In this document: positions 8,082-31,617 of the stretch, piece by piece
Position numbering within the stretch: the stretch's first letter is position 1
Layout: every line of letters starts with the position of its first letter
NCBI GenBank assembly: GCA_010909165.1
Contig: VJWM01000106.1
Coordinates: 434,001 to 498,000 of the forward strand
Length of the DNA: 64,000 nt
Direction of reading: 5' to 3'
From: Anthoceros angustus
Lineage: Eukaryota > Plantae > Anthocerotophyta
Notes under the pieces: generated by a model
The model's input: the letters and a program-made list of their open reading frames with translations, nothing else
Database searches by the model: none
Told to the model about the DNA's origin: nothing
Translations under genes and position numbers: made by a program

Positions 8082-10805
8082 TTACGATTCATCCGTTTGG
8101 TAGTCAGGTTCGATGTCCTCGTTGGGGTGCACTTGCACGTAGCTGCTCTTTGTCACTGCTATTGGCTGTGGCACAGGAGGGATGGACAACCCAAGTACAA
8201 AAGCAACCACCTGCAGCAGAGGTCTTAGTCAGATGCAGTAGGATACCAACTCCAGCAGCTTGTTCTGTTCAGGTGACACTCAGCAGGCCGCAGAACACTC
8301 TAAGTCACAAGCTGCCGGATCCCGGAAGAGTCAAAACTTGGTTGAGAGGCCAGGCTACCATGGCAATTCCGGAGCAGATAATGCTGAACCCTGGGCAATG
8401 GAAGGGTGCTCTGTCGGACAGAAAGAGAGCTGCACAGGTAAAGGATAGGTGGTGCTCAGTACCCAATACATCAATGACTTAGAAGGGAAGTTCAGTTCCT
8501 CGTGTTACCTGTCAAAGGGCTAGTGATGAGAGGAGCCACTATGCTGGCAAATGAGCGCACACCTGCTACAAATCCTTGCAACTTTCCCTGCACAAGTTTT
8601 CCAGCGTGTGCATGTGATTTTTTGCAAAAGCATGTGATGCTCATCGTTATCTCTGGCCTCTTTGCAGAAAACACACCTGCTCATCCGGTACAGCAGCTTT
8701 GGAAACGAGACTCCCAATCTGCGTATGACCACGTAAGCAACAGGTAGGGATTCAGACTCATGTACCCTCATCTGCTGTTCCTACAAATCAAAGGGTTGGT
8801 AGCCAAGGTACTTACAATTGGAAACACAAATACAAACAGCACTCCTGTCAGGGCAGCCGCATAGGGAACCTGTAATTACTGGCAGTTAGCGCATTATTGA
8901 GAACATTAGGCTGCCTGTACAAGACAGAAGTAAGCTGATTGGTTACCCAAGGCGACCAGGCTATGCCATACAGGAAGGCCTGCATGTCAGAACAGCACTG
9001 CTTGTCAGTCACACTATGGGGTAGCTCCTACATGTAGATCGACACTGTTTGCAAGTGACCACGAGTTGGTGTTTGACACGCATCATCCTTACATGAACGA
9101 AGGATGCAAACAGGCCAGTGCAGAGAACTTTCCGATCTCCAAGTAGGTGTACGAGGAGTGGCATGATGATTATCTGATACACATAATAACTTCAGTAGCC
9201 CGAAAGAAAGTGGATGGATCTGTTGTTGAGATCGTCAATCTAACAAGCAGGGAGAGTGGAAGGCCTCAGTGACACGCACCTGAGAAATAACCGAAGCTCC
9301 TCCGGCAATGAGCATCAACTCCGCAAACTGATCTTTCCCGAAATTGAATGTTGCTTTCAAGTAGTACTGCGGTTGTGGAAGTTGAAATACAAAATTTCTT
9401 GTATTGCAACAGAAAACTAGGTGATGAATGGTGGTGTGTGATCAACCTACCAAGAGCGAGCTCTGAAGTCCGGCTTCTCCAAGATTGGAGAAAAATGCGA
9501 CCAGAGTGACTCGCATGAGCAATTTGCTGGTCCCCAGGCAAGACTATTAGATCCAGGGCGACATCTCAAGGATCAGCGGCTTGCAGATACGCTGACAACA
9601 TGGAAGCTATTTGCGGAGAGAAGGAGTCTCTCACCTGCCTCGAACAACTTCGGCAGTCTGCTGTATGGAAGTTCGACTACGCATGATCATAGGAGCTGAT
9701 GGCATCCATGAGGGTTTTGGCTGCTCTGCGGTCTGATCCGGGGGAGTTGCTCCTGTGCTCATGAGTGGCTGCCTTCGATTTGTCTCCACCAAGAACACTT
9801 TCAAGTAAACGGCAGCGGCGAGGGAGAGCAATGCTGCTGCCTGGTACGGGCACCCAAGCACACTAAGAAGACGGAACATTGGCTAGCAGTGTGCCCAAGT
9901 GAGGTGAATCAGATTTTCAAGACATGAAGGTCTCACTTTGAAGACATGGTCCTCGCCAAGGCCCCTGGCTAGCAAAGTTCCCATGACGAAGCCGGTTGAG
10001 AGAGAGCCCATCATGATCCCAAACGCAGGTGCCCTCAGCCTTTCCTCCACAGTATCTGCCTGCCCACAAGTCTTACAGATGTCTGTCAAACGTTCTTACA
10101 GTTGCAGCCACAAGATTTTTGAGGCAGGAACCTGGCCACACTGGAAGGGTGAAGTCTTTACCACATATGCCAGAGCGAGGCATGTCGTGCTGCCTTCACT
10201 AACCACTGCTGCAATGGTGCGCAGGACAAAGTATATGTAGACGAAGGTTGTGTTTCTGCTGTAGGACAAAACAGCTGGTTGTGCAGTGGTGTGTAAACGA
10301 TTAGTGACTGAGCTTGAAGACTGTTGACAGTGCAACTGGCACAGCCTCCCGGAAATGCAAGAGCTGGGAAGAAAAAACCAGGATCGGTCTGTCTATGGGT
10401 ACCGATGGGAATGATGGATGCCGTGAAAGGCACCAACAACAACGGTTTCCGTCCGTACTCGTCCGATAAACCCCCGAGTACTGGTGTAGCCAGCATGGTG
10501 CCTATGCCAGCTACCTGCAATTTTGCATTCCAATTCAGAATCTCTCCTTTCTTGTCAAGACATAAGGTCTTGCATCTTACCAGCAGCGTTAGACTCAAAC
10601 TCACCGCCTGCTGGAAGCCGGACAGAAAGATCGCCAAGCTGCATTTGTTCAGGCCAGGGCAAAGGGCTGCCAGAGTGACATCAATGAGGGCAGGCCAGAC
10701 CATCACAGCTGCCGTGTAATGGAGAAACAGAGCCAGCATAAGATGGGCAAGGGGTCGGACTACCCCAACCCTCTCCCTCATACTCCCCATAGCTGACTGC
10801 CTCAT
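8082..10805 (-). CDS. Major facilitator superfamily transporter (tetracycline:H+ antiporter-like / HIAT-MFSD14 type), multi-exon
   Basis: Hydrophobic helices; MFS motif A GGLSDEYGRKPLLL; PAFGIMMGSLSTGFVMGTLLAR; QGKLQGFVAGVRSFASIVAPL; final exon VVAFVLGLSIPP...QTDES*. Start may be the Met at 10805 or 10790. Confidence 0.9.
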
Positions 10806-12562: not shown

Positions 12563-15500
12563 ATGGCTCCCGAGACAGGTGAGAAACGCAGGAGGCGGAG
12601 TTCTGGAGACAAAAACGAAGGCGATGAGGATGCACAACCACCTCCTTCGAGAACAGCTAAAATAGATGCTCGTCCATCCCCTCACCCGCTGCAGCAGCCA
12701 GCAGTTCCGAGTCTGCCAGCAGCAGCAGCAACAGCAGCAGCATCAAACCCTGGGATGCCCGCTCGCAAGACCAAAGCTCCGGTGAGGCGTGATCTTTCCC
12801 CGACCAGGTCCTCCGCTGGCGCCGAGAGCCACAGTCGGTCGCGCTCGAGCTCCCCCTCGGCGGTCTCCGACGAAGCGCAGGGCAGGGGAAGGGGAAGGGG
12901 TAGGGGTAGGGGGAGCGGTAGGGGAACGGGAACGGGAACGGGAACGGGAAGAGGAAGAGGAAGGGGAAGGGGAGCGCGGGGCGGAGTTGGGGACAGCAGT
13001 ACGCAACCAAGGAGGAGGGTGACGGCGGAGGATTCAGAGGAGATGGAGGACGAAGTGGTCCAGTTGGCTGAATTCCGGAAGTTCCTCCAGGAACCCGCAA
13101 CACAAGCGGCACAGATGCCTGCCAATGCTCCCGCTCCCGCTCCTGCTCCCGCTCCTGCTTCCAATCGGGTAGCAGGCATGCCAATTCAACCGGGCTCGGA
13201 CTTCATTCCAAAGCGAAATAGCAGGCTTGTTGAGGCTGTGCTCAGATTCGACCAATCGGCTCTGAAGAAACAACAGATGAAGTTGAAGAAAGGCGATCCG
13301 GAGAAAGAATACGTGCTGTGGTTGTTGCGCAACTGGCCTGCATATGAGCAAGGCAGATTGGATTTGGAAGCGGCGGCTCCACGTGCACCAGTTCGACAAC
13401 CTTCACCACCACCTCCACCGGAGGCACAAGGGGAACCGGCTCCCGCTCCTGCTTCCAATCGGGTAGCCGACATGCCAGCCGGCATGCCAATTCAACCGGA
13501 CTCGGACTTCATTCCGAAGCGAGAAAGCAGGGTCATCGACGCTGTGCTCAGATTCGACCAACCGGCTCTGAGGAGACATCAGTTCAAGTTGAGGAAAGGC
13601 GATCCGGAGAAGGAATACGTGGTGTGGTTGTTGCGCAACTGGCCTGCCTATGAGCAGGGCAGATTGGAGTTGGCAGTGGCGGCTCCACGCGCAGTGGCGG
13701 CTCCACGCGCAGTTCGACAACCTTCACCACCACCTCCACCGGCGGCACCGATGCCTGCGGATGCAGATGCAGATGCAGATGCAGATGCTCCTGCTTCCAC
13801 ACGGCAACCTGACGTGCCACTTAAACCGGGCTTGGCCGCAGATGCTCCTGCTTCCACACGCCAACCTGACGTGCCACTTAAACCGGGCTTGGACTTCACG
13901 CCTACGAGCACGCTTGCTTCCTGGGTGCGGAAGTTCGACAAAGCGGCTCTGATGAGCCATCTGATGAAGCTCAAGACGAACACTCCGGAGAGACAGTACA
14001 TCCAGTGGTTGTTGAAGAATTGGCCGCCTTTGGAAGCTCCAGCCGCAGTTCCTGAACCACCAGCAATCCGTCCACCAGAGCAACCACCTCCATCACCGCC
14101 ACCAGCACCACCAATTCTTCCACCAGCGCAACCAGCCCCACGACCACCACCACCACCACCTCGGGCAAATCCAGCCCCGCTTCGCAGTCCGGTTGCGCAT
14201 GTAAGCTTGAGCCCAGGAGGGAGCTCGAGCTCGAGCTCGGGCTCGGGCTCGGACTCGGACTCGAGCTCGGGGGGCTCGAGCCCAGAGGGCCCAAAGAGTC
14301 CAGACTCGGGCTCAGACTCCAGCCCAGAGCGCCCGAGCCCGGGCTCAAACTCCAGCTCCAGCCCAGACCGCCCAAAGATGGTAGACTCCGGCTCAGACTC
14401 GAGCCAGAAGAAGGCAGACTCAGGATCAGGCCCTGGTGACGAGATGGATGAGGATGAGGATGGGGATGGGGATGTGGATGGAATATCACCGCAGAGAAAG
14501 GGGGCGCAGGGAGGCTCAGGATCATTCTCCCGCCTGGTCTCAGGCTCAGCCCCGAGCCCAGAGCGCCCAGAGGAGGCAGACTCAGGATCTGGCCCTGGCG
14601 ACGAGATGGACGTGAGAGAGAATGTGGCTGGAATGCCAGACGACGGAGAGGAGGAACCATTTTACGCTGAGGGACCATTTTACGCAGAGCGACCATACAT
14701 CGATGATGGCACATATTACGCGGCCGTGATGGACGTGAGGGAGAATGTGGTTGGAGTACCAGACTCGTACGCAGAGGACGGGGATGAGGATGGGGGTAGG
14801 AGTGGGGATGGGGACGGGGATGAGGATGGGATGTCTGACGATGAGCAGGAGGAGGAGGGTGTGGTTGCCATTTCAGACGAAGAGGGGGAGGAGGAGGAGG
14901 AGCAGGGCGTGGTTGCGATGTCAGACGACGACAAGGACGAAGGAGAGGATTTGATGCCTAGGATGATAGAGGCATTCGAGGCAAGGAGGATGGAATTCGC
15001 CACAACGGGAGTGACAGTGAACGCAATACGCTCGCAACTGGAGCAGGATATGGATCTGCCAGACAAAGCCCTGAACCTGCCACTTCTCAAGGCCCTGCTA
15101 CGCAAACTTGTGGACGAGGCGATGGTGCAATGGCGGGACAGAGTGATCAACGCGTTCCAAGCTCGGTCGGCCCAGGCTGTCCAGGACACGTGGAATGCGA
15201 CCCAGGTGCGGATCATCCTGGAGAGCGACCTCGACGTGGAGTCGCTGGAGAACTACGAGAGCTTCATACAAGAGATGCTGAAGATCAGGCCTGCCTTCGC
15301 GGCCAGAGCGGGTGGGTGGATGGGGGGCAACCGGCCCACAGCGGAGACCGTGAGCAGGGTTCTGGAGCAGGATCTGGGCTTGTCGGAAAACGACCTGGAC
15401 ATTTACCGGGGGCTGATCGATGTGCTTCTGGAGGAACTGGCGGGCACGGAGGTGGTAGAGGAAGCGGAGAGGGCCGCCTTCCGCGAGCGACTGAGGGAGG

Positions 15501-18500
15501 TGGCGGGTAGGGTTTATCCCAGGGATGGGCGCAAGATCAGCAGGTTCGATTTCCAGAGGCAGGTGGAGCGGGAGATGCTGATGCGTCATCACACCCTGTC
15601 CCCGCACGGGGAGGACTTGGACGAAGTGTATAGGGAGTTGTCGAGCAGGGAAGGAGAGGCGGAGAAGGCAGAAGCCGAGAAGAAGAGCAAGAGGAAGAGA
15701 GGCAGGGACAAGGATGACCCGACGCTGCCGGATTTGCTCGAGGATGAGCCGCCCACGAACAGAGCAAGGGGGCAGGATGGTGGCTCGCAGAAGCGGTACA
15801 TCAGGCCGGGGCGCTTGCGGATCAGTCCCCCGCGTGATATGGAGGACTGCCGGGAGCCCAGGGAGAGGGTGGAGGCTGTTGTGGGCGGGAGAAAAGATCG
15901 GGGGTTGTCGGTGATGGAAGACATGAGGATGGACGTGGACAGCGCTGTGCCTCCGCCCAGCAGCTTGAGGCTGCCGGCTAGTTCCGGGGATGCGGGTGGA
16001 GATGGAATGGTGATGCTCACTGCCGAAGACTTGAATGTGGCTCCCTGTCCACGACCATTGCGGCCCCAGGGCAAGGTAGCTCTCCTGGGATTAGGTCTGA
16101 GCTGCAGCGACAGAGGATGCAATGGGAATGCATGGCATGGAGGGCTATAGCGTACACCAGGAGGAGATGAGCGCTAGCTGCAGGCACCAGCTGGTTGCAC
16201 CATCGTCGTCTGATAGTAGCATCTGTTGGTGGATGCTCTGCTCCAGGTTGTGGGTGCTCTGCTCCAGGTTGTGGGTGCTTCAGGATGCATGGGTGTTTGT
16301 ATGCGCCATGCCGACGTTGCTCGGAAGGTGCAGCTTGTTAGGGCGCTGACTGACCTATGGAGTTGTGCACTTGCAGGTGAAAGCAGCACGGGATGGACCG
16401 AAGGGCACAGCACCGGTGCCAAGACCAGCCCCTCCGCAGGTACCCCTTTCCGTATGCCTCTTGATGTGCATTGATTCGCTTGAGAGGTTGGCGTCCATGG
16501 ACAGGACACGGTTGCTGCTTCTCTGCATCACGCAAAGGTTGTGCAAGAGGCCATGTTATGGAGGACAGCCATGGCCACAAGCATACGCTGCCTGAGGTGC
16601 ACTCCTGAAGGTTCTTTGATGCCCTGTCGGATAGTGTAGCTATTTGTTTTTCAATCACGTGAGAATGCTCTTGGACGTGCCCATTTGTCCTGATCGTCTC
16701 GACTCTGATGCTGTCGGTGCCTGAATGGTGTGCGCGCTCAGCAGATAGCATCCTCTTCCGGGACATCAGGTGTTGCCCAGCAACAGTCGGGAGATGAAGA
16801 ACCTGTGAAACAGATGGTTCCCCACTCTGCGGTGCGTTCCAGTTCATGTATTTTACAGTCAGTCCGAATTGATGCTACTGTATGTATGCCTCATGCGTTG
16901 TGCACATGTACGCAGCCTAAATTCCGACGACCATCTCTGCGAGAACGACCACCTCTGCGGGAACAACCACGCCAGCCTCCAGTTGCTTCACCAAGACCTG
17001 TACCAGTTGTCCCCCAGCGTCAACAATCGAGAGATCAACAACATGGGAGACCGGTAATTCCTTAGTCTGCGTGTGCGTTCCAGGTGCGTTACGGTCGGTC
17101 CGAATTGATCCCACGTCTGTATGGATGCCTCACACGTTGTGCACATGTACGCAGCCTGCATACCACCCATACCAACGAGGACAACCTATGCGAACAAAAC
17201 CAGCCCAGCCTCCAGTTGCTTCACAATCTGCCTCAGGTGGCAGACAGGCAGCAGGAAGAAGCGATACTGGAGGAAGAGGAAGAGGCACTGTGGATGAGCC
17301 GAGGAAGGCCGTAGGAGGAGGGGACGAAGGAGAACCGGGCTGGGTCCCGCCGGATTGGATGAGGTTCCACTTGGGGGAGGAGAGCATGCAATACTTCCAG
17401 CCCCAGATTGGATTTGCCTCGGGCTTCACATTTATCCCGGACTCCTCCCATGGTTTCTCTCCTCAAAGACAAAGGGAGGGAGATGACAGAAACGCTCGAA
17501 CCCACCATGGACAGGACAATCTGTCGCTAGCAGGAAGGGTCCTGAACCAGCTCCCTCCACAGGCCAGAGTTTCCCTCTTGGAAACTCTCAACGGGGAGGT
17601 GCCGATGGAGGTGCAGTGCGAAGTGAGGAGAGAAAGGGAGCCTGTACAGGACACGACGAGCACAATGGCTGTCAGGATCAGCACTGTGCAATCGAGTGCG
17701 TTGGTGGCCTCACCACAGCAAGAGGCTGCTTATTCGAGGATGGGCAAGAGGAAGAGAGAGGGGAAGGGGGGAGAGGAGGAAAGCGAGGAGGAGGAGCGAA
17801 GGACACAGAGAGCCCGTGAGAGGGGAAGAGAGGAAATGAAGGGGAAGGAAGAGGAGGAAAGGAGGAGGAGGATGGAGGAGGACGTGATGAGAGATTCATC
17901 ACCTGAAGAGGGAGAGCTCAGAAAAACACCGTCACCCGAAGAGGGAGAGATAAAAGAAGGGTCATCACCTAAAGACGCAGACATGAAAGGATGGTCACCA
18001 GTTGAAGAGGGAGAGATAGAAGAAGGGTCATCACCTAAAGACGCAGACATGAAAGGATGGTCACCAGTTGAAGAGGGAGAGATTACAGCACTGTCATCAC
18101 CTGAAGACGCAGACATGCCAGAAGGGTCACCAGTTGAAGAGGGAGAGACTAAAGAACCGTCATCACCTGAAGACGCAGACATGAAAGAAGGGTCACCAGT
18201 TGAAGAGGGAGAGATACCGGGAGCAGGTGATGCAAGGTTAACACCAGACGCAAAGAGTGCAGACACGGAGAAGAGAAGAGATGACCCAAGGACCATCACA
18301 GACATACAGGAAGCATCGCCAGGACGGAACGAGGGGAAGGAGATGGGGAAAGAAGAGGAGAAACCAGCTAGCCCAGCGACCATGAAGCAGAAGGTGAGCA
18401 CTGGGCCGGTAAGAGAGTTTCACAGATTAATCGATAGACTACCCGACGAAAAGAGATTGATTCTGTTCCAGAACATGGAGGATACTCCGCCGGGAGAGAA

Positions 18501-21500
18501 AGTTCCCGTGGAAATCGTGGCATCAGGGAATGTGGAAGCTGCCACGTTGGGGCCACCAGGAACCGCTCCTCCGGCACCCATGGGAGGGCAGTGCTACACG
18601 ATCGTGGAAATGGAAAACGCTCTCATGTTGGGATCCGGCTCACAGCTCGATTTGGGACCTAGTTCACAGTTCGATCTGGGACTCGGCTCAGAGTTCGATT
18701 TAGGACTCGGCTCACAGCTCGATTTGGGACCCGGCTCAGAGAGCGATTCTGGACGCGGGTCACAGCCCGATTTGGGTCGCGTCTCACAGCATGTAGAGAA
18801 GTCGCTGACGCCGGACAGGGCAGCCGCAACAATGGAGGCCTTGGCACTGCTGCTACAAACTCTTCCGGAGCCGGAGCAACAGCAGGTCCAGGAAGCCATG
18901 GCCGATATGAAGTCGGGGGAGCGGCTGGTTGTTCACTCGGCGGAAATGGTCGAGGTCACCGCAACGGTAATCAGGCCGGAATCCGAGAAGGGCTCGCCGA
19001 AACAGACACAGACACCCTCCCGGTACGGCTCTCCGACCGTCTTCCCCGAATCCCTGGACGGAGCTGGGCCAGACCAGGAGGGCAATGCAACACCGAGGCC
19101 CCGGGTTGTTTACATGGCAGACAGAGGCGTGGTCCGCAGCCGTGCTCCCGCGCCGCAGCAGGAGCAGGAGCAGGCGCCCTGGCAGCCGGATCCGGTGACG
19201 GCCAAGGAAGCGTTCCTGATGGCGCAGCTGGAGCAGGAGAGGAGGATGGCGGAGGAAGCACGGGAGGTGCTGCGGCAGGAAAGGCTGGCGGCCGCGCAGG
19301 AAGCAGAGAGAGAGAGGAGGGAAAATGAGGAGAGAACCAGGGCGGAGATCGAGAGAGTGCGCCTGCAGCACGCGCAGGAGGTGGAGGCCATGAATCAGAA
19401 GCTGGCAGCCGCGCTTTTGCAGCTGCAGCAGGCCCAGCAAGCAGGTGCGTTGCAGCCGCCATTGCAGCAGGTGCAGGGGTTTGAGGACGTCATGACCGCG
19501 CCCGGCCCGGAGACGATGTATGTGCTACAGTCTCTCGTGGATTTGTCCAAGAGCCAGGAGCAGGCGCCGCAACAAGAGATTTCGGGGCCGCAAGAAGAGA
19601 CGCAGGAGCAGGTGTTCGAGGACGAGATACCTCAGCAGGAGCAGGTTTTGCAGGACGATCTGCCGCAGCAGGAGCAGGTTTTGCAGGACGAATTGCCGCA
19701 GCAGGAGCAGGCGTTGCAGTACGAGATGCCGCAGCAGCAGGAGCCGATTGTGGAAGACGAAGAGATGCCGCAGCAGGAGCCGATGGAGGAAGACGAGGCG
19801 ACGCCGCAGCAGCAATATGCGGCGGGCGGATACGTAGATTTGCTCTTGGGAGCACGTAGCCCGGAACAGGAGGAAGGAGAAGAGGGAGGAAGGAGAAGAG
19901 GTGGAGGAAGAGATGGCTGACGCGCCGGAGGGACGAGGGCTTCCGCGGTCGCCGAAGTCGCCGCCGCCGCCGGCGCCGCCGATCGCGTCACGGAGGCCGC
20001 TGCCAGTGCCGCCAGCGCCGCCAGCGCCGCCATCGCAGCCGCAGCAGCAGGCCGGCGGCAGGCAGGCACGACAGCCTCGACAGCCGAAAGTGCCGCGGGC
20101 GCAGGATGGAGGAAGGCAGCGGCAGCGGCGGCAGCGGCAGCCACCACGGCAACTGCGGCGGCCGGATCCAACTCCGGCCGGGCCCCAGAAGCCCCGATCC
20201 GCCCGATGCTGCATTCTGTGGGACTGCGGTGGTGCCGCGGGTACCTCCCGCCGCACCTCCCGCCGCAGATTCACCCGCCTGGTTTTGAGAAGGAATTGGA
20301 GGAACGACAGGAACACCGGTCGCTGGTGATCAAGATGATAGACAAAGTGCAAGCGTGGGATCAAGTGCTGCCGCCGGAACCGCACGAAGAGCGATGGAAG
20401 CAGTGGCAGCTAGAGCGATTGCAGCTGGAACAAGCCGAATCGGAGCGGCAGCGGCAATTAGGGCAGCAGCCAGTGGAGGAGGAGGAGGAGGAGGAGGAGG
20501 AAGAGGAGGAGGAGGAGGAGGCATGGCACCGGCCGGAGCATATGGAGGAGGACCTGCCGCAGCAAGAGGAGGAGGAGGAACGGGAGGATGGACAGCAGCA
20601 GCAGCAGCAGCAGCGAATGCGTGGATACCGGTGGTTGCGGTGGAATCCGTGCCCGCAGAACCTGCTGGCCAAACAGGAGAAGGCGCGGCAATGGATTTGG
20701 GGGTACGAGCTTAGGAAGGGGGTGGAGAAAGAGATGGAGAAACAGCGGCGCCTGCCCAGGTTCGAGCGCGCAGTGGAAGCGATGCGGCAGAGGGCTCACA
20801 TGGAGAGGGTGCAGGCGGGGCAGCCCGTCGGCCCCAAAGCTTCGGACAGTGCAGTGTTCCCAGATGCCACCCCGTACCCGCACTACATCACGACGAGTGA
20901 CCCTGTGCTCGAAGGGCGAGACGTGATAGATGGCCAGCGGGTTTTCACACAGGACCCCAGACTGCTGGCCTGGGCGGCCAGGAGGCGCCAGGTCATGTCG
21001 GACAATATGCGCCGTTTGTGGCCCGGTTTTGATGCCGATGGGTTTGTCGATGGGGTTGATCAGCCTCCTGTGGCTCCTCAGCCCCCTGGGGAGGCCCCCC
21101 GCGATGTGCCTTTGGGGTTCGGTCCGTATTTCGAGCAGCCTGCCCCGGCTGCGCTGCCTGGGGGTCCTGGGTCTCCTGACATGTATGTGGGCCTGTACAC
21201 GAATGACGGAGCAGTCGCGTTTCAGTACGTGGTGAGAGATGACGGACAAGCACAGCCTCAGCGCACGGCGATGGATGGAGGACAGGACCAGGGCCAGGAC
21301 CAGGACCAGGACCAGGACCAGGACCAGGACCAGGCCGTGATGGATGGAGGGCAAGCCCAGGCCCAGGCCCAGGCCCAGCACATGGTCATGGATGGAGGGC
21401 AAATGATGGATGGAGGACAAGCGCAGGCCCAGAACATGGACGTGGATGGTGGACAAGACCAAGCCCAGGCCCAGGCCCAGAACATGGTCGTGGATGGTGG

Positions 21501-24500
21501 ACAAGCGCAGGCCCAGGTGCCGGCCCGGGTTCCTCAGCAGCTGGATGAGGTGGAGCAATGGAAGGCCGAGAAGATACAAGAGCATGAGCTTCGAGGCAAT
21601 TATTATGGCAAGCCGGTGAAGATGCCGTTCTTGGAGGACCCAGGCTTCCGGTGGGAGTACAGGGGAACTCCCGTATTCCAGCCCAAGGACGGACATCGCA
21701 GCATTGGCCACCGCAAGGATATCGTTGTACGTAAAAGCTTGAAGCGCAGCATGCATAGATGCAACACATACTGGCTGGGGGTGGCATCAGGTGGAGGAGG
21801 GCGTGCGCTGTATGTATAGCACTTTGGGGCTCTCTCGCTCATCCTGTTTTGTTTTGTTTGTGTGTGGCTTGCTTCTGCTTCTGAGAGCTGGAAGTGGGTT
21901 GATGTATCCAGGACGATGGAAGGTGGACAGGCAAAGACAAGCCCCATGCGTGGGAATACGCCGGGGTAGTGTACTTGCCGGAACGCCCTGGCCATTTCCC
22001 GATCAACCCTCGGGACCTCCCTTTCACTCCGCAGCGTCTCGTTTATGTGGTGCAACGGATGGGGTTCACGTGGGAAAAGGACACTCTGGCCAAGTTGCCC
22101 AGGTATTCGGATCTCTGCCGAATTCTCCGAATGGAGCGCGTGTTTCCATCTCCGGCCTTCTCAACCTATCATTGGGATCCCAACATGAACTACGGACAAG
22201 ACTCACCTGCAAAGAGAGAAAGAAGGAGGGCTGCAGCTCAGGCCCGAGCAGCTCGGGCCCGCGCTGCACCTGGCGGGAATGGAGCTGAGGATGAGCAAGC
22301 GGAAATGGCTGCAGAACTCGAAGCCCTTTTAGGATTTGCGGATGACGTTGGTGACTTACAGGATCCGCATACTGTGATGAGGGAGGGGTTGCCATATGCG
22401 GATCAGAATCTGGTTGCAGATGATTTTGCAGATGGGGTCATGTTTAGAGGGCATGCTGCTGCTGCCCCTGCAGACCGTCGGAGAGGCAGGGGCAGGGGGA
22501 CGGGGACGGGGAGGCCCAGTCAGAACTCTCCAGACAATGGGGCCTCCAGACGTGGACGAAGACGCACAAAAAGAGACAAAGCTAACGACTCATATATGGA
22601 TGATGAGTTTGATCTTGACGACATTGTTGAGGGAGGAGACCAAGTATCTGCAGACCCACCATCACCTGGCTCTGCGGACGGGGGTACAGGCAGACGCATA
22701 CCCAGGAGCCAGGCGAAGGCTGTGGTGGCCGATGACGGCGATGATGATAATGACACTGGAAGGGGCGTAGGTGGAGGTAGAGGTAGAGGTAGAGGTCGAG
22801 GCAGAGGTAGGGGTAGGGGTAGGGGTAGGGGTGGGATATGGGTAGGGGTAGGGGTAGGGGTAGGGGTGGGATATGGGTAGGGGTAGGGGTAGAGGTAGAG
22901 GTAGGGGTAGGGGTAGAGGTAGAGGTAGAGGTAGGGCTAGAGGCAGGGGCAGGGGCAGGGGACGGGACGGGAGGCCCAGTCAGAACTCTCCAGACAATGG
23001 GGCCTCCAGACGTGGACGAAGACGCACAAAAAGAGACAAAGCTAACGACTCATATATGGATGATGAGTTTGATCTTGACGACATTGTTGAGGGAGGAGAC
23101 CAAGTATCTGCAGACCCACCATCACCTGGCTCTGCGGACGGGGGTACAGGCAGACGCATACCCAGGAGCCAGGCGAAGGCTGTGGTGGCCGATGACGGCG
23201 ATGATGATAATGACACTGGAAGGGGCGTAGGTGGAGGTAGAGGTAGAGGTAGAGGTCGAGGCAGAGGTAGGGGTAGGGGTAGGGGTAGGGGTGGGATATG
23301 GGTAGGGGTAGGGGTAGAGGTGGGGGTGGGATATGGGTAGGGGTAGGGGTAGAGGTAGAGGTGGGGGTAGGGGTAGGGGTAGAGGTAGAGGGGCTAGAGG
23401 CAGGGGCAGGGGCAGCAGGGGGCCAGTGGGGAGCCGTTGTGGATGGTCCCAAGGGGTAGAGGAAGGCCCAGGAAGAATCCTGTGGTTGTGTCTGATGACG
23501 ATGAAGAGACAGAGGAGGACGCGGAGAGACGGAGGAGGACGGCGGAGAGACAGAGGAGGACAGCGGAGAGACAGAGGAGGAAGGCGGAGACACAGACGAG
23601 GAAGGTGGAGACATGGATGAAGACGAAGAAATGGAGGAGAGCAGAGACCCACCACCAGATGTGGTTGCTGAAGTCAAAAGTCGGTTCCCTCGGACACGAG
23701 GAGCAGGTGGGAGGCAGCCGCCACCGGAATCAAACCAGAACTCTGACACTACCCTCATGATGGTGTTGCTTCCGACAGCTGAGCAGCAGTTGGCAGCTGG
23801 TGCACAGAAGCCGTACGAAGAGGAGCTGGATGACACAGTGTATGCTGGAGATTCCGCACTTGCCCATGACTCCTCTGATGGCTCCGAATATGAGTACAGG
23901 GTAGAGGACGGTGATGCAGGCCCAGAATCAGGAGAGGACATGTTGGAGCTGCCAGAGTCGCCCACTGTGAGCTATCCTGACCGTGCCGCATTTGCGTTGC
24001 AGATACAGATCACCACTCGTGTCACTTTGCACCGGTTGTCACGTTCGTCTGCTGGAGAACCCGAGTTCAGGATTGGTGTGGTGAAGGAAAGAATTGCCAC
24101 GATTGTTCGTCTGCCTAATTCATCAGGTGGGAGATTGGAGGGGATCTCACCTGGAACAAGGGCAGAGGAAGCAATCACAGCACCGGTGCTTTCCAAGCTG
24201 GATATGAAGCTGAGGACACTGGAACCATTGACTTCCTCACCTGGAGATACGAGCAGCCAGCTTCCGGGCATTCATGCATTTGCGATTGATGTGCGCCGGG
24301 ACGAGGTTCCCCTTCTGCAGACGTCGGGAATGATATCGCTCCACCTTCCCTCGTCTCACATCTGGGGGTTGGACCTTAGGAGTAGCGGAGGGAATTGGCC
24401 AAATGCTCCTCAGGCGTGGCAGCAGGAAGGGGAGGGGCGGCCAGCTCTGCCTCTGGGGCAGAACAATTTCTTGGTCTACCATGGCCAGATTCAGCCTAAG

Positions 24501-27500
24501 CTTTTGGAGAACTTTCTGCTTGCTGAAGTGGGCTCCCCAGCTCGACGGGATGCCGAAGAGGAGCTACTCCAGAATCTCCCCGAGATCTCCAGACGGGGTC
24601 ATGTCAGAGGCAGTATGTCTGAGGTGTATGAAGAAAGTGAGGATCCAGGATGGCAGCTGGTGAAATGGGAAGGCAAGTCCAGAAGTATGAGAAGGATGCA
24701 GGCCGAGTTTTTCCAGAAGAAAGCAAAGAACTGGACAAAGAGAGTCGCAGAACAGAGGGAACGACAGCTTGCACTCAGAGCTCCAGATCGTCCCCTGGCT
24801 CTCCCATTACCTCCTCGACCTACTAGTTTGACACCATCTCAATCTCAGTTTCTCTATTTGGTCGAACGCCGGCAGTGCCTGCTCCGAGCAAAGCGAAGGG
24901 TCATGGCTCAGGCTGCAGCGTACCACAGGAAGTTGCCTGTGCTGTCCCATCAGGCTCGTAACACTCTGGCCGAGTACCAGTCACCTGAGAAGCAGTTGGA
25001 GTTGCAGGCTGAGCGACAAGCTGTGATCACAGAAAAGTTGTTTGCCCATGCCAAGCCGGAGATGGAGGAACCCAATATTCCGACCATGTCGGATCGCTAT
25101 GATACAGCCCGCCGGTGGCTTGAGGTGATCAACGAAAGGGTCTTGGCTTTGGCAGTGGACAAATTTGCGCTTGCTGCCAAGCTGGCGAAGCACCCGTCAG
25201 TCGGCCTGAGCAGAATTCTTCCACAGAAAGCTGCTGTGAAGAGAGGGGCCCATTGGGCTGCAAGTAAGCAGCCAAGCTCTGATCACGAGAAGGTTTTACC
25301 TTTAAGTGCAGTCCTCAGTCGGAGTGAGGGAGGTCCCTCGTACAGGAGGCCTCCTTTGGGCGAACTTGAGCAAGAGCTCCAACAGCAGTCACAGATGCTG
25401 AGGCATAGGAAGATGAGGTTTTTGGTGGAGGCCAGAGACCATGTGCTTGCTGAGCATCTGAAGCATTTGGAAGCACTTGAGAAGGAGACAGACCCAGCTT
25501 GTGCTCGCCAGGCTAAAGCTCTTGCCCAAGCCCTATGTGGGAAACTTGAAGAATCGCTCGATGACCTCGAGGGCCACATCAGAGCATTAAGGCGGTTGCT
25601 TGGACGAACTGATAGTACTGCTGCAAAGTTGTCCGATCTGTCTCCCGAGGAATCTAGAGCCCGAACTGTTCTAGCAACCTTATTGGAAGACAGGGATGTC
25701 TTGCGAAAAGTTATTCAAAGAATTGAGGGAAAGGCAGGATTTGAAGGAGAGGATGATGATCCTTTCGACGTGGAGCAAGAGGTTCAAGTGAAATTGTTGG
25801 AGATGTCTGATCATTCCGTGTCCCTGCAACTGACAACCCAGGGCGGAAGGGACGCTTCGGAGAGGGTGCATGTGGACTTGACCGAGATCACTGATCCTCA
25901 TGATTCGCTTATGATGATCAAGGTGGGCATCAGGCCATCCTTAGGCAATTTTAGAACTCAGGATGGGCTGAGTCCAGAGGATTCGGAGGACAGAGACCCA
26001 CTGGTGGAGGCCATTAAGGAGGTCAGACGGTTGGAAGGTATTGAGGATGCCCATGCTCTGTTCATGCGCCAGCTGCGGATTGTGGAAGAGTGGCAAAGGA
26101 AGAGGTACAAGCTGGGGCAGGCTCGAACAGCCATAGCCCTTCGCAGGGCTCTGCGGGAGGAGAATGATCGAAAGTGGCAAGAAGGACTGCTAACAATGCG
26201 GCTTTATGAAAATGCTCTCACGAAAATTTGTGCTGAGTTGCAAGTAGGGGATCGTGATGAACTCACAGACTGGCTGATTGGCAACCAGCTGCGGCAGGAA
26301 GGGATGGTAAATGCCATCAATTATGTAATCCGGACGTATGGACTGAGTGTGTCTCATGCAGCACAGTGGGTAACGGACAGGTTCCAGGAGCTGGCAGGAG
26401 TTAGAGTCAGTATTACTGTGGAAAACTATGTCTTCGAGGATCCACCTGAGTTTCTCACATTTGATGCCACAATTGGTGAGCATCCTTATCTCCTTGCGCT
26501 CCCGGCTCCGGGGGATTCAGATTCTATTTCCAATTCTGACTACAAGGTGACTGATCAAGAGGAGGACAAGGATGGAGTAGAAGAAGTAGAAGCGGCAAAT
26601 GTAGAATCGACTTCCGAAGTGAGCAAGCTTGTGGCAATTCCTGCACTGCTACTTACCACGGCTATCACAGATCCAGCTTCTGGAGGAAGCCAATCCATGT
26701 TGGGTTCATCTGACACGGTAGAAGAACCTACAGATGCTATCTCTTCCCTTCCAGCAGAGACACCCAAAGCTGAGAATGCTCTCATGGTGGAAGAGGAGCA
26801 GATTCCTCAAAACATCAAGTCCAGCTACTTCAAGAGGAGCTCGCAGTTTGTATACAGTCTTTGCGGCTCAGGGGGAGCCATCGTGGGGTCAGCTATTGTA
26901 GTGGAAAGAAATTTGGGTTTGACAGTTATGCATAATGTGATGGACAGTGCTGGGGTTGTGCTAGGCAAGGGCCATGCATTTGCAGTGGGTGGTGTGAGCG
27001 TCAGGGAGAAGGCCTCGTTTCCTGACCTTGATCTGACTTTCTTGGACATGCCAGGAGGTTCCCATCTGGGCCTTACTTCCCCTGCCACTGGCACCGTCTC
27101 CCCTGAGCTGCCAGACAACATGAAGCAACTTCTAGGTGAGCAGGTGTTCATGGTATCTCATCCTCGAGTGAACTGGCCGGCAGTCACTCCAACAGTTGAA
27201 CAGTCGCAAGAAGAGCCTGTCACAGTAGTTCGAGGCGTGATCTCCAAGATACTAAGCTGTACCAATGTCTTGGCGACATACAAGTGTTTTCCTGGCTGTG
27301 CAGGGGGAGCTGTCTTCCTTGCGTCGTCTGGCGAACTTTTGGGCATCAACACCCATACGTGAGTTACTCTCTCGTTTGCGAACTCTGTCCTCTTTGACTT
27401 TTCGTGGTAATCGTGCTCCCGACGTTGCTTGTGCCATGCAATGTTCTGATGGCTTTCCGAGTTTTGCTCATGCCCTCCTAAAGTTTAAGCAAAGAGGACG

Positions 27501-27754
27501 TCACGGAGGAGATGCGGGCAGTCACCGAGGACATCAGAACCAAATTCGGTAAGTTAACTGACAAGGCCTTTGAGAGAAAGCAGGCGGAGGCAATGCAGGA
27601 AGCATGGAACAGGCTGTCCTCAAAGTTTCGGGCAGATTATGCCAGAAGAAATCTAGTGTACAAAGGTTCCTGCGGTGTGTTCGTTCCGTGGAATGTGATA
27701 AAGGAAAAGCTTGACAAGATCCTCCTCAGGGAACGCCAGAAACACATGTTTTAG
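12563..27754 (+). CDS. Giant, largely low-complexity protein (~4,700 aa if reconstructed): triplicated unknown domain, 4x DEK-C-like, EEGEI array, RG/AT-hook tracts, coiled coil, C-terminal trypsin-like domain; several single-base frameshifts
   Basis: Same-strand ORFs of 1202, 949, 537, 303 and 1249 aa. Phase-0 GT-AG introns join the exons 12563-16075, 16377-16439, 16742-16831, 16916-17053 and 17155 onward. A phase-2 intron 27359-27483 joins the last exon in frame. The join near 21780-21910 is inferred and less certain. Confidence 0.6.
14945..15645 (+). other. Four tandem DEK-C-like helical domains within the giant ORF
   Basis: VTVNAIRSQLEQDMDL, WNATQVRIILESDLDV, PTAETVSRVLEQDLGLSENDLDIYRGLI and ISRFDFQRQVEREMLM fit the DEK-C pattern (T-x-x-x-V/I-R-x-x-L-E-x-x-L/M-G-L..L..K/R..I), recognised from memory. 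Confidence 0.6.
17896..18216 (+). repeat. Coding tandem repeat (60 nt / 20 aa unit) containing SP(V)EEGE[ILT]
   Basis: Units such as tcacctaaagacgcagacatgaaaggatggtcaccagttgaagagggagagat are repeated; six EEGE[ILT] motifs in total. Confidence 0.95.
22490..23410 (+). repeat. Near-identical ~460-bp tandem duplication with (GGGGTA/AGAGGT)n RG-coding tracts
   Basis: gaggcccagtcagaactctccagacaatgg...gatgataatgacactggaaggggcgtagg occurs at 22511 and again at 22971 (offset 460). Confidence 0.95.
26848..27754 (+). other. Trypsin/chymotrypsin-fold peptidase-like domain at the C-terminus of the giant ORF, nucleophile Ser replaced by Ala
   Basis: GSAIVVERNLGLTVMHNV (His), DLDLTFL (Asp), FPGCAGGAVF (G-x-S-G-G position is GCA=Ala), GELLGINTH, and after the intron GSCGVFVPWNVI. 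Confidence 0.75.
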
Positions 27755-27903: not shown

Positions 27904-30900
27904 CTACAGATGAGTTCTCACAGACTCAACCGAGATTAGCCCAGCTTCATTACCAGGATGTTTGTAATCTCCGACCAAGAAACTGTGAACTAGTCCATTC
28001 ATGTCTGTCCACCAGCTCTGGCCCGGCTGCTTCCGCGCCCCGATTCTTACTCTGCTTGCCTGCATTTTTCGTGCTTCCTCCCACATCTGGGCGCCGGTAT
28101 ATATGTTCAACATTGACACATATGCTGCAGCATCTTTCTCGTCTAGCCGCAGTGCTTCATCGAACGCATGGCGCCCAACCTCCACGTTGTTCCACTTTCG
28201 ACAGGCACCCAGAAGGGTGTGCCAAACCGATGCACCATGCGGTGCAGGCATTGCCCTTGCCAGAGCTAGTGCCTCATCCAGGTGTCCTGCGCGTCCAAGA
28301 AGATCCACCATACAGGTGTAGTGGTCCGCATTGGGAGTCAAGCCATACTGTTCGCTCATAGACTCAAAGTACGCTCGCCCCTTATCCACCAGACCCGTAT
28401 GACTGCATACTGTTAGTACACTAAGAAACGTCACGCCATCTGGCTGCTTGCCATCCTCTCTCATTCGGAGAATCAGGTCAAAGACCTCTTCACTGTCTCC
28501 TTGATTGGCATATCCTGCTATCAGTCCGTTCCAGGCAACGACGTCTCTTTTTGGCAATGCAGCAAACACCTCACGTGCATCACCCATGCTGCAGCACTTT
28601 CCATACATGTTCATTAAACTGCTGGCCACAAGCACGTCCGTTTGGAGCCCTTCTTCTTTAATCTGTGCGTGAAGCTGCCTTCCCAGATGTAAAGCCGCCA
28701 TGTTCGCACATGCCTGCAGGAGACACAAAAATGTCACAGAATCTGGTGCAACCCTGTCTTCTTCTTGCATAGCCCTGTAAAGACCCAGAGCTTCGGGGCC
28801 CATGCCATTCTGAGAATATCCAGCAATCATGGAATTCCACATAACCAAGTCTTTCCGAGGAAGTGTCTCAAACACAAGCTGAGCGTCCTCCAGGCTGCCA
28901 CACTTTGCGTACATGTTTACCAAGCTGCTGCCAAGAAACAAGTCTTGGTGAAGTTCCTCTTCTCTGATTTGTGCATGAAGCTGCTTACCCTTCTCCAACG
29001 CTGAGGCGCCCACACTTGCACATGCCTGAAGGAGGCACAGAACTGTCACAGAATCGGGTGCAACAATGCCTTCTTCTTGCATGGCACTGTGAAGATGAAG
29101 GGCTTCCTGCCCCATGCCCTGCTGGGCATATCCTGCTATCATGGCATTCCATGTCACCACATTCTTTTGACGAAGTCCATCAAACACCCCCTGAGCACCC
29201 TCTAGGTTGCCACACTTTGCATACATGTTCACCAGGCTCCCACCTAGAACTACATCATCTTCAAGTCCTTGTTCTTGAATCTGTGCATGAAGCTCTTTTC
29301 CCTGTTCCAAAGCCAGGGAGCCAACACTCGCACATGCTTGGAGCAGGCACACAAATGTCACAGAATCGGGTGTGACAACACCTTCTTCTTGCATAGCCTT
29401 GTAGAGACAAAGGGCTTCCGGACCCAGGCCCTGCTGCGAGTATCCTGCTATCATAGCACTCCACGTCACTACATCTTTCTGAGGAAGTTCATTAAACACC
29501 CCTCTGGCATCGTCGAGGCTGCCGCACTTTGCATACATGTTCACCAAACTGCTCGCTACAAAGACATCAGCTGGCAGTCCTTGTGCTCTAAGCTGCAGAT
29601 GAAGCTGCCTACCCTTCTCCAAAGCCGGAGTGCCCACACTTGCACATGCCTGCAGAAGGCACACAAACGTCACAGAGTCAAGTTCTGCCAAGCCCTCTTC
29701 TTGCATGGCGGAGTGGAGACAAAGCGCTTCTTGCCCCATGCCCTGCTGGGTAAATCCTGCTAGCATGGCATTCCATGTCACCACATTCTTAACACGGAGT
29801 CCATCAAACACGCGCTGAGCATCCTCTAGGCTGCCACACTTTGCATACATGCTTACCAAGCTGTTGGACACAAAAACATCAGCCAGAAGCCCTAGATCTC
29901 TAATCTGTGCATGCAAATGCCTCCCCTGTTCTAAAGCTGAGGCGCCCATATTTGCACATGCCTGCAGGAGGCACACATAAGTCACGGAATTGGGTGGAAC
30001 AATACCTTCCTCTTGCATAGCATTGTAAAGCTGCAGGGCTTCTTGCCCCTTGCCTTGCTGAGAATAACCTGATATCATGGCATTCCACGTCACCACATTC
30101 TTCTGACCAAGTCCGTCAAACACTCTCTGAGCATCCTCCAGGCTGCCACACTTTGCAAACATGTTCACCAAACTGCTGGCTACAAACACATCAGCTTGAA
30201 GTCCTCGTTCTCTAATATGTGCATGAAGCTGCCTCCCACTCTCCAAAAAGGAGGTCCCCAAATTTGCACAAGCCTGCAGAAGGCATGAGAATGTCACAGA
30301 ATCAGGTGCAACAATGCCTTCCTGCAGCATATCCCTGTAGATACTAAGGGCCTCTTCCCCCATGCCGTGCTGGGAATATCCTGAAATCAAGGCACTCCAT
30401 GTGAACACATTCCTTTCACTGAGGCTATCAAACACAGCCCGAGCATCCTCTAGGCTACCACACTTTGCATACATGTTTACCAGGCCCCCACCGACAACCA
30501 CATCCCCCTGAAGTCCTCGTTCTCTAATCTCTGCGTGAAGCTGCTTCCCCTCCTCCAAAGCCAGGATGCCAACACTTGCACATGCCTGAAGGAGGCACAC
30601 GAATGTCACAGAGTTGGGTGCAGCCAGGCCCTCTTCTTGCATAGCCCTATAAAGACGAAGGGCTTTCTGACCCATGCCCTGCTGGGAATATCCAGCTATC
30701 AAGGCACTCCACGTAACTACATCTTTCCGAGGAATCCCGTCAAACACCCTTTGGGCATCTTCCAAGCTGCCACATTTTGCATACATGTCCACCAAGCAAC
30801 TAGAAACAAACAAGTCATGCTCAACTCCGCTACCCAACACATCTGCATGCACCTTCTGTCCAGATTCCAAGTCCCCTCCCCTTCCACAAGCCTGAAGGGC

Positions 30901-31617
30901 TGCTACAAACACATGACCATCTGGCTTCACACCTGACCCGCGCATCCGAAGATACAGTTCTATAGCTTGCCTATCTTGTCCATGCTTCACATGAGCAGAA
31001 ATGATGGCAGACCAGGTGAAGGCATCTGGGTTGGCAACCATATGGAACACATCCACAGCTTCTTGCAACCTGGCATGGGAAGCATACATTCGCAGGATGT
31101 GATTGCACAAGAACGTGTCCGACTCGTACCCCTTCTTCACGACGAGGGCATGCACACGGCGACCCAAGGGCAGATCCTTCTTAACCACACATAACTTGAG
31201 AACCGCATAGAAGAGGGACTCAACAACAAGGCAGCCATCGTGCACCAGCACTCCCAGAGCCTCGACAGCCTCGCCTGGCTGCCCCTGCTGACATAGTTCG
31301 ATCACGGTTTGAACTGTCACAGCACTTTGGTCTGCTGCAGGCCTGCCAGAGTCACGATCATCCGGCACGACCCACTTGGATGTAGGGGCACGACAACCCA
31401 TCTGCACATCCAGGGCAGCCAGCTTTGCACGGGCTGCCGTTCTTCCATAGGTTCTGCACCTCGCGGCTTCGTTCCTTGCCAGCAGCTGATTCCCTGAAGT
31501 CGGGTGAGCAGGAAGACCTCCTGGAGACCAACCAATTCGGGGCGTCCAAAAAATCTGTCCCCACGGCGGCTCCCACTTGCGTGGCTCTACTGTCACGCTC
31601 CACACCGTGACATCCAT
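27904..31617 (-). CDS. PLS-class PPR protein with E1/E2 and partial E+, no DYW (organellar RNA-editing factor type)
   Basis: About 29 P/L/S motifs (e.g. VNMYAKCGSLEDAQRVFD, VVTWNAMIAGYSQQG, SVTFVCLLQACA), then P2-L2-S2, E1 (ASVWHTLLGACR), E2 and QPGQSWW..VHSFLVGDYKHP. The true start codon is uncertain. Confidence 0.95.
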   Translation of the reverse strand: MDVTVWSVTVEPRKWEPPWGQIFWTPRIGWSPGGLPAHPTSGNQLLARNEAARCRTYGRTAARAKLAALDVQMGCRAPTSKWVVPDDRDSGRPAADQSAVTVQTVIELCQQGQPGEAVEALGVLVHDGCLVVESLFYAVLKLCVVKKDLPLGRRVHALVVKKGYESDTFLCNHILRMYASHARLQEAVDVFHMVANPDAFTWSAIISAHVKHGQDRQAIELYLRMRGSGVKPDGHVFVAALQACGRGGDLESGQKVHADVLGSGVEHDLFVSSCLVDMYAKCGSLEDAQRVFDGIPRKDVVTWSALIAGYSQQGMGQKALRLYRAMQEEGLAAPNSVTFVCLLQACASVGILALEEGKQLHAEIRERGLQGDVVVGGGLVNMYAKCGSLEDARAVFDSLSERNVFTWSALISGYSQHGMGEEALSIYRDMLQEGIVAPDSVTFSCLLQACANLGTSFLESGRQLHAHIRERGLQADVFVASSLVNMFAKCGSLEDAQRVFDGLGQKNVVTWNAMISGYSQQGKGQEALQLYNAMQEEGIVPPNSVTYVCLLQACANMGASALEQGRHLHAQIRDLGLLADVFVSNSLVSMYAKCGSLEDAQRVFDGLRVKNVVTWNAMLAGFTQQGMGQEALCLHSAMQEEGLAELDSVTFVCLLQACASVGTPALEKGRQLHLQLRAQGLPADVFVASSLVNMYAKCGSLDDARGVFNELPQKDVVTWSAMIAGYSQQGLGPEALCLYKAMQEEGVVTPDSVTFVCLLQACASVGSLALEQGKELHAQIQEQGLEDDVVLGGSLVNMYAKCGNLEGAQGVFDGLRQKNVVTWNAMIAGYAQQGMGQEALHLHSAMQEEGIVAPDSVTVLCLLQACASVGASALEKGKQLHAQIREEELHQDLFLGSSLVNMYAKCGSLEDAQLVFETLPRKDLVMWNSMIAGYSQNGMGPEALGLYRAMQEEDRVAPDSVTFLCLLQACANMAALHLGRQLHAQIKEEGLQTDVLVASSLMNMYGKCCSMGDAREVFAALPKRDVVAWNGLIAGYANQGDSEEVFDLILRMREDGKQPDGVTFLSVLTVCSHTGLVDKGRAYFESMSEQYGLTPNADHYTCMVDLLGRAGHLDEALALARAMPAPHGASVWHTLLGACRKWNNVEVGRHAFDEALRLDEKDAAAYVSMLNIYTGAQMWEEARKMQASRVRIGARKQPGQSWWTDMNGLVHSFLVGDYKHPGNEAGLISVESVRTHL

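Follow-up and report, generated by a model that had tools for sequence, protein, structure and literature searches.

The locus described here has its closest described counterparts among the HtrA/DegP proteases (family S1C of the PA clan in MEROPS), and it shares compositional features with the Sm D1/D3 proteins, in which SmD1-type GR tails carry methylated arginines to which Tudor domains bind. In overall layout it recalls FAM111A and FAM111B, which are vertebrate nuclear trypsin-like proteases (PMC7534640, PMC10469034). The locus lies on the + strand of a 64,000-nucleotide stretch of the hornwort Anthoceros angustus genome (assembly GCA_010909165.1, contig VJWM01000106.1, positions 434,001 to 498,000), referred to below as the window, in which it occupies positions 12,563 to 27,754 and consists of five long open reading frames (ORF1 to ORF5) and a short terminal piece. 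A preliminary description of this DNA had taken the frames for what was probably one hidden gene of novel architecture. The explanation that we favour overall, tentatively and with somewhat less than even confidence, is a real lineage-restricted coding locus with a conserved core, the upstream part being most likely a portion of the same unit. The core ends in a putative HtrA/DegP-like domain in which the position of the nucleophilic serine is occupied by alanine.

Layout and Coding Character of the Locus

Between 12.5 and 27.8 kb, the + strand is open over stretches of 1219, 999, 632, 325, and 1285 codons, which together with the terminal piece are distributed as follows:

12491/12563-16150, + strand: ORF1 frame
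16921-19920, + strand: ORF2 frame
19921-21819, + strand: ORF3 frame, 632 codons from stop to stop
21903-22880, + strand: ORF4 frame
23505-27362, + strand: ORF5 frame
27490-27754, + strand: terminal piece

The gaps separating the long frames measure at most ~770 nt, and coding potential inside the interval is found on one strand only, in agreement with the preliminary description, which had placed all large ORFs on the + strand with no promoter-sized gaps. On the upstream side the closest coding piece is divergent, being on the minus strand (it ends near 10805), and the downstream PPR gene, also on the minus strand, is convergent, with its stop at 27904, 150 nt past 27754; the interval is therefore bounded on both sides. 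The frame-bearing DNA has a GC content of 55-63% and, because about 3% of random codons are stops at this composition, frames of at least 1,000 codons are not the product of chance. In every long frame the GC content of the three codon positions follows the order GC1>GC3>GC2, the same as in the neighbouring PPR gene.

A codon model was trained on the PPR gene alone and applied to 120-nt windows, recording the best of the six frames in each one (chance expectation, 17%). The ORF's own frame was the best in 27 of 57 windows of ORF1, 26 of 45 of ORF2, 16 of 29 of ORF3, 9 of 13 of ORF4, and 53 of 61 of ORF5, so that the ORF frames won 47-87% of their windows. The frames are thus coding in character: ORF5 behaves as an ordinary gene, and ORF1 to ORF4 are dominated by repeats and low complexity. 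Two antisense ORFs, at 20458-21756 (- strand, 432 aa) and 23042-23965 (- strand, 307 aa), are mirror-image shadows of low-complexity coding tracts and not genes.

The Conserved Core and Its Single Relative

The core unit would encode a protein of ~1,390 aa, running from ATG 23443 or from an upstream exon to 27358 and, after an intron, from 27490 to 27754. In order, its product would comprise a basic head, short and AT-hook-like, then an acidic repeat, a helical region of ~900 aa, and the C-terminal HtrA/DegP-like domain. Its main parts are:

23505-27358, + strand: ORF5 part; an array of acidic heptads is followed by ~900 aa that are helical and non-repetitive, then by a linker and the HtrA-like domain
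About 26790-27358, + strand: HtrA-like domain, with the His motif LTVMH, the Asp motif DLDLTFL, and GCAGGA replacing GNSGGA
27359-27489, + strand: intron, GTGAGT...TTTAAG, 131 nt, phase 2, T fraction 0.38
27490-27754, + strand: last exon, 88 codons, with the stop TAG at 27752-27754; a helical insert, then GSCGVFVPWNV...KIL

An exhaustive phmmer search of ORF5 against 1.84 billion representative proteins returned exactly one match, here called P0001, a protein of 1451 aa whose only known source is one Logan contig of 11,350 bp (E 1e-117, 38% identity). The alignment of P0001 with ORF5 is colinear throughout, starting in the acidic head and ending at the final residue, and the ~900-aa helical region is conserved between the two. 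Conservation is highest at the end of the frame, the last 190 residues of ORF5 being 60% identical to P0001 versus 38% overall. Judged from this alignment, the core is conserved with another species, and the ORF5 unit defines a family of proteins of which just two members are known. Word-index protein searches with ORF5 and with the ORF5 C-terminus were blank; for ORF5 even P0001 was missed, because low-complexity words swamped the query. No relatives were found in metagenome (JGI) scans or in a viral-contig scan, and when all ORFs and pieces of them were scanned against Pfam, no match rose above noise. The earlier remark that no recognised family has this layout is in line with these results, Pfam being blank and ORF5 having one relative among the representatives searched.

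In the alignment, ORF5 and P0001 end together, in one column two residues past a G-I-N-T motif, and in the window this stop is a TGA inside the donor GTGAGT. The simplest reading of the common stop column is a phase-2 intron shared by both genes. An in-frame intron leading to the last exon had been proposed before; the GT-AG intron is indeed present at 27359-27489, but its phase is 2.

The C-Terminal Domain Resembles HtrA/DegP Proteases

The C-terminal domain was compared at the profile level by hhalign, using a two-sequence profile (ORF5 and P0001) against an alignment of Escherichia coli DegP, DegQ, and DegS, whose sequences (degP, degQ, degS) were taken from annotated records. The hhalign score was 33.4 (P 5.7e-4), a value reached by none of 150 column shuffles (maximum 21.1). 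At a low mact setting, the alignment extended to 151 columns and was colinear across the whole protease domain. The paired segments were LTVMH on TNNHV (His), DLDLTFL on SDIALIQ (Asp), and GCAGGAVFLASSGELLGINT on GNSGGALVNLNGELIGINT; His105 and Asp135 of DegP were aligned to His and Asp, and Ser210 to Ala. A search based on the ESM language model pointed in the same direction, since the top 30 look-alikes were all trypsin, Trypsin_2, or related PA-clan clusters (score 0.97). These comparisons support, at profile level, the assignment of the tail as an HtrA/DegP-like domain of the PA clan. The trypsin fold of the preliminary description therefore stands as HtrA-like similarity by profile comparison and by ESM look-alikes, but the catalytic serine is gone.

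At the nucleophile motif, the window has GCAGGA and P0001 has SCAGGA, so that Ser is replaced by Ala in both and the His-Asp-Ser catalytic triad is incomplete. Loss of the serine in both species makes a pseudoprotease the most likely interpretation, in which the HtrA-like domain would be a non-catalytic, peptide-binding module. A conserved Cys stands one position before the Ala of the nucleophile site, and its use by the domain as an alternative appears less likely. When the last exon was compared with the Deg profile, GSCGVFVPWNV was placed on GIGFAIPSNM, colinear and just after GINT, with a score (11.9) not above those of the shuffles. No PDZ domain was matched, and the protein ends 88 codons past the GINT motif.

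The Head of the Last Unit

The ORF5 frame is preceded by a short segment in another frame:

23443-23524, + strand: ATG, AT-hook-like head, and beginning of the acidic array, in a frame one base off that of ORF5

This segment reads PRGRGRPRKNP at 23446-23478, with the motif RGRGRPRK at 23449-23475. It contains the AT-hook core R-G-R-P with basic flanks, which joins the ORF5 frame only if the first unit of the acidic array has lost one base. The units of this 21-nt array start at 23505, 23525, 23546, 23567, and 23588, and the first one (23505-23524) has only 20 nt. The position of this short unit is exactly the point where the AT-hook frame would enter the ORF5 frame, as expected from the loss of one base. 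The interval between ORF4 and ORF5 also holds a duplication and 35-nt arrays, described below.

The Upstream Part: ORF1, Candidate Small Exons, and ORF2

The 11 kb upstream of the core, on the same strand, would encode a repeat-rich, mostly disordered sequence, most likely joined through short T-rich GT-AG introns. Its first half contains the following features:

12563-16075, + strand: ORF1 part, 1171 codons, from ATG 12563 to a candidate donor GT at 16076; an RG/TG tract, three copies of a ~60-aa domain, Pro/Ser/acidic tracts, four helical units, and a basic cluster
13163-13375, 13469-13681, and 13859-14044, + strand: the three ~60-aa domain copies (BLASTP 1e-13 and 1e-10)
14951-15649, + strand: four helical units, mutual identity 25-30%
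17155-19917, + strand: ORF2 part, 921 codons; an RG patch, a Glu/Arg-rich helical stretch, and EEGEI, GSQLDL, and Q-rich arrays
17896-18216, + strand: EEGEI array in ORF2
18628-18790, + strand: GSQLDL array in ORF2
19602-19814, + strand: Q-rich 33-nt repeats in ORF2

ORF1 can be connected to ORF2 by an exact GT-AG chain that leaves from donor 16076 and passes through three small candidate exons (16377-16439, 16742-16816, and 16916-17053) to 17155. The length of every small exon is a multiple of 3, and the candidate introns, of 301, 302, 99, and 101 nt, are in phase 0 throughout. Their T fraction is 0.26-0.33 versus 0.14-0.16 in the flanking ORFs. The phase-0 introns proposed earlier between ORF1 and ORF2 are present in the sequence as candidates. 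Two exon-plus-intron segments in this region (16767-16991 and 17004-17224) are 74% identical and keep their splice dinucleotides in both copies; they are old duplicates of one candidate exon-intron unit.

The three ~60-aa units of ORF1 share the pattern D-F-x-P ... P-E-[KR]-[EQ]-Y-[VI]-x-W-L-L-[RK]-N-W-P and, from their mutual similarity, are a true internal repeat; Pfam and PDB searches yielded no relative for them. A match to the PEBP-like ribosomal protein mL38 was non-significant (E 0.13) and was rejected; that resemblance centres on P-[DE]-x-E-Y-V-x-W-L-L-x-N-[WI]-P. The four helical units had been labelled as DEK-C-like. By eye they have in common with DEK-C a helical pattern, T-x-x-x-[VI]-R-x-x-L-E-x-x-[LM]. 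No support for the label was found. The units at 14951-15649 gave no match to Pfam DEK_C at E up to 10, a four-unit profile matched no solved DEK domain in the PDB, and no ESM look-alike was obtained. The label was dropped. Of the other modules previously listed for the locus, the RG tracts, the threefold ~60-aa domain, the Pro/Ser tracts, the EEGEI, Q-rich and MDGGQAQ repeats, RGRGRPRK, and the acidic array are present. PDB searches with ORF2 to ORF4 and with the four helical units returned only low-complexity or non-significant rows.

Frame Breaks and Arrays Between 19.9 and 23.5 kb

The region between ORF2 and ORF5 has the following features:

19918-19920, + strand: in-frame TGA, the sole separator of ORF2 and ORF3, which are in the same frame
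19921-21819, + strand: ORF3, with an Ala- or Pro-rich start, poly-Glu, a non-repetitive middle, and MDGGQAQ repeats
21279-21517, + strand: MDGGQAQ repeats in ORF3
21727-21911, + strand: candidate ORF3-ORF4 intron, GTACGT...CCAG, 185 nt, phase 0, T fraction 0.31
21912-22880, + strand: ORF4 part, with an aromatic-rich N-terminal ~100 aa, an Ala/Arg stretch, an acidic patch, and (GR)n
22482-23415, + strand: tandem duplication of 457-460 bp, 97% identical overall, with a 300-nt core 100% identical

All breaks other than the introns had been regarded as single-base shifts. A pair of such shifts is not shown between ORF2 and ORF3, which share one frame and are separated by a single TGA; enumeration of possible introns across this junction yielded many weak candidates, none of them convincing. 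From 19921 to 20288 the DNA is GCC/GCG-rich and all three + frames are open, reading as Ala-rich, Pro-rich, or Arg/Ser-rich, for which reason the coding frame of this segment cannot be chosen from the letters alone. The Pro-rich frame preferred before (19914-20200) had a codon-usage score below that of the Ala-rich same-frame reading. For the ORF3-ORF4 intron, other candidate donors exist at 21781 or 21791.

ORF4 terminates within a (GGTAGG)n array, and each copy of the tandem duplication likewise ends in such an array, which has a 35-nt period and contains two GGGATATGGG elements. Every GGGATATGGG element (four in all, at 22832-22877 and 23292-23337) moves the GR frame by one, and the arrays are unreadable in a single frame. 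The GR-coding hexamer arrays with this period extend over 22776-22961 and 23236-23391; one extra G per GGGATATGGG element would produce a 36-nt in-frame unit, GRGRGRGGIWGR. Either the 35-nt period reflects a homopolymer error that is systematic, or the arrays form a genuine minisatellite that is non-coding. As for the 457-460-bp duplicate, it may be a very recent event (unequal crossover) or an inflation of the assembly.

Neighbouring Genes

The window is land-plant nuclear DNA. Upstream of the locus, an ORF resembling a first exon (10158-10805, - strand) shows hydrophobic segments and a GGLSDEYGRKP motif; it is probably part of a membrane transporter, and had no Pfam match as a fragment. The downstream gene (27904-31617, - strand) is an intact PLS-class PPR gene of 1237 aa with an E motif, which contains seven repeats of 312 nt (104 aa) with identities of 65-80%. 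Further away, at 39169-40035 (+ strand), there is a fragment of a Copia-type reverse transcriptase (RVT_2, E 2e-54).

One Gene, Several Genes, or a Decaying Locus

Joined together, the upstream part and the core would encode a nuclear scaffold-type protein of ~4,700 aa. Its composition (RG tracts, basic clusters, and the AT-hook core) suggests a nuclear, nucleic-acid-associated protein, whose dead-protease domain would bind peptide termini or extended strands of its partners, and some of the frame breaks would probably be indel errors of a nanopore-type assembly. The single transcript, the nuclear localisation, the scaffold role, and the breaks as errors are what we infer from this arrangement. 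Evidence for one unit comes from the confinement to the + strand, the phase-0 chain of T-rich GT-AG introns, the T-rich gap between ORF3 and ORF4 with its GT-AG options, the common frame of ORF2 and ORF3, and the 20-nt unit at the switch from the AT-hook to ORF5. From the sequence, that all five frames form one transcript encoding ~4,700 aa is possible, a little short of an even chance. Several observations weigh against this reading. As a break of the substitution type, the TGA at 19918 is atypical of nanopore indels; with the 35-nt period, the frame is lost four times, twice per array; and a tandem duplicate with an identical core stands between ORF4 and ORF5. P0001 corresponds to ORF5 only, and its first Met lies no more than ~2 residues from ATG 23443 when both are placed relative to the motif V-[VT]-[ST]-D-[DE]-E-E-x-T-E. 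Residues 1-125 of ORF4 had no relative in a word-index protein search. Among the internal copies of the ~60-aa domain, the ratio of non-synonymous to synonymous substitution (dN/dS) is ~0.6, mildly below 1 and based on small counts. As for the HtrA-like domain, Pfam searches to E 10 with ORF5, its C-terminus, and P0001 returned none of its families (Trypsin and Trypsin_2 included), PDB searches with the single sequence and with the two-sequence profile gave no protease match, and two AlphaFold runs on the domain (single sequence, and two-row alignment) reached a predicted local distance difference test (pLDDT) value of 30.

The coincidence of the P0001 Met with ATG 23443 means that the last unit may be a separate gene. 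In that case two (or three) adjacent genes would lie on the same strand: a repeat-rich one covering ORF1 to ORF4, possibly split at 16.1-17.1 kb, and an independent gene of ~1,390 aa from ATG 23443, coding for the helical region and the HtrA-like pseudoprotease. We regard this as a plausible but less probable arrangement. Beyond the restriction of the sole homologue to ORF5 and its Met at a nearly homologous position, it would account for the more ordinary codon statistics of ORF5 (87% of windows, as compared with 47-69% in ORF1 to ORF4). However, only ~100-560 nt separate the last upstream stop (22880 or 23340) from ATG 23443, and because a coding-like duplicate and G-rich arrays fill this stretch, a 3' end and a promoter could hardly both be accommodated there. 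In addition, ATG 23443 has a T at position -3, and the start of P0001 was set by an ORF caller accepting ATG in any open frame; an internal exon therefore fits too. A further possibility is that the TGA, the arrays, and the shifts are real and that the locus is a decaying pseudogene or partly dead, with at most the ORF5 unit functional. The frame is disrupted at least five times from 19.9 to 23.5 kb, which fits this possibility, as do the dN/dS between internal repeats and the 35-nt units, whose four identical occurrences are what real, inherited sequence would show. It is nevertheless improbable: stop-free frames of 1,000-1,285 codons (P <1e-13 at ~3% stops per random codon) would not persist under neutrality, all breaks but the TGA fall in repeats or G-runs, and the core is conserved with another species. 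An origin as transposon, Helitron, or virus cargo or remnant (a transposon had been one of the options raised in the preliminary description) finds some basis in the Copia fragment of the window, but is very improbable. The locus is not surrounded by inverted or long direct terminal repeats and has no second copy within the window; Pfam scans detected no transposase, reverse-transcriptase, Rep-helicase, or capsid domain in it; and viral contigs and JGI metagenomes contained no relative. A single relative in 1.84 billion proteins is not what a spreading element would leave.

Under the favoured reading of one lineage-restricted unit with a conserved core, the gene would be among the largest of hornworts and its product would be a clean example of a giant disordered protein, restricted to one lineage, whose anchor is an ancient protease fold without its nucleophile. 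Where the proteins of the ORF5 family are localised, what they bind, and whether any proteolysis is left can be tested directly. In addition, the locus marks probable assembly indel errors or an inflated tandem duplicate, and at such a place automated annotation will cut a gene apart or leave it out.

Comparison with Known Systems

The likeness to HtrA/DegP consists of a colinear series of motifs: GSAIVV..LTVMH, DLDLTFL, G..VxxxxxP, VVxGVIS, GxxGGA, and GELxGINT. In contrast to HtrA/DegP, the hornwort domain has neither the nucleophilic Ser nor a PDZ domain and falls below Pfam thresholds. It also contains a helical insert of ~55 aa before the last strands, contributed by a separate exon, and it is joined to a helical, disordered protein of more than 1,000 aa. 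With Sm D1/D3, the likeness lies in the (GR)n tails: in PDB searches the long GR dipeptide runs of both frames, ORF1 and ORF4, were matched to the SmD1 tail, and for ORF4 SmD1-type GR tails were the only matches. This match is compositional only, since there is no Sm fold and the GR runs lie in microsatellite DNA with frame problems.

FAM111A and FAM111B provide an analogy only, as no sequence similarity to them was detected. They are active serine proteases of ~600-730 aa, whereas the hornwort protein is without the Ser and 2-7 times longer. What they would have in common with it is a nuclear, nucleic-acid- or chromatin-associated N-terminal part and a trypsin-like domain at the extreme C-terminus. 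The most far-reaching form of this comparison, which we consider unlikely as a whole, would be one expressed, hornwort-specific nuclear scaffold of ~4,700 aa, in which an HtrA-derived pseudoprotease or Cys-variant docks or clips chromatin or ribonucleoprotein clients and which has become FAM111-type by convergence.

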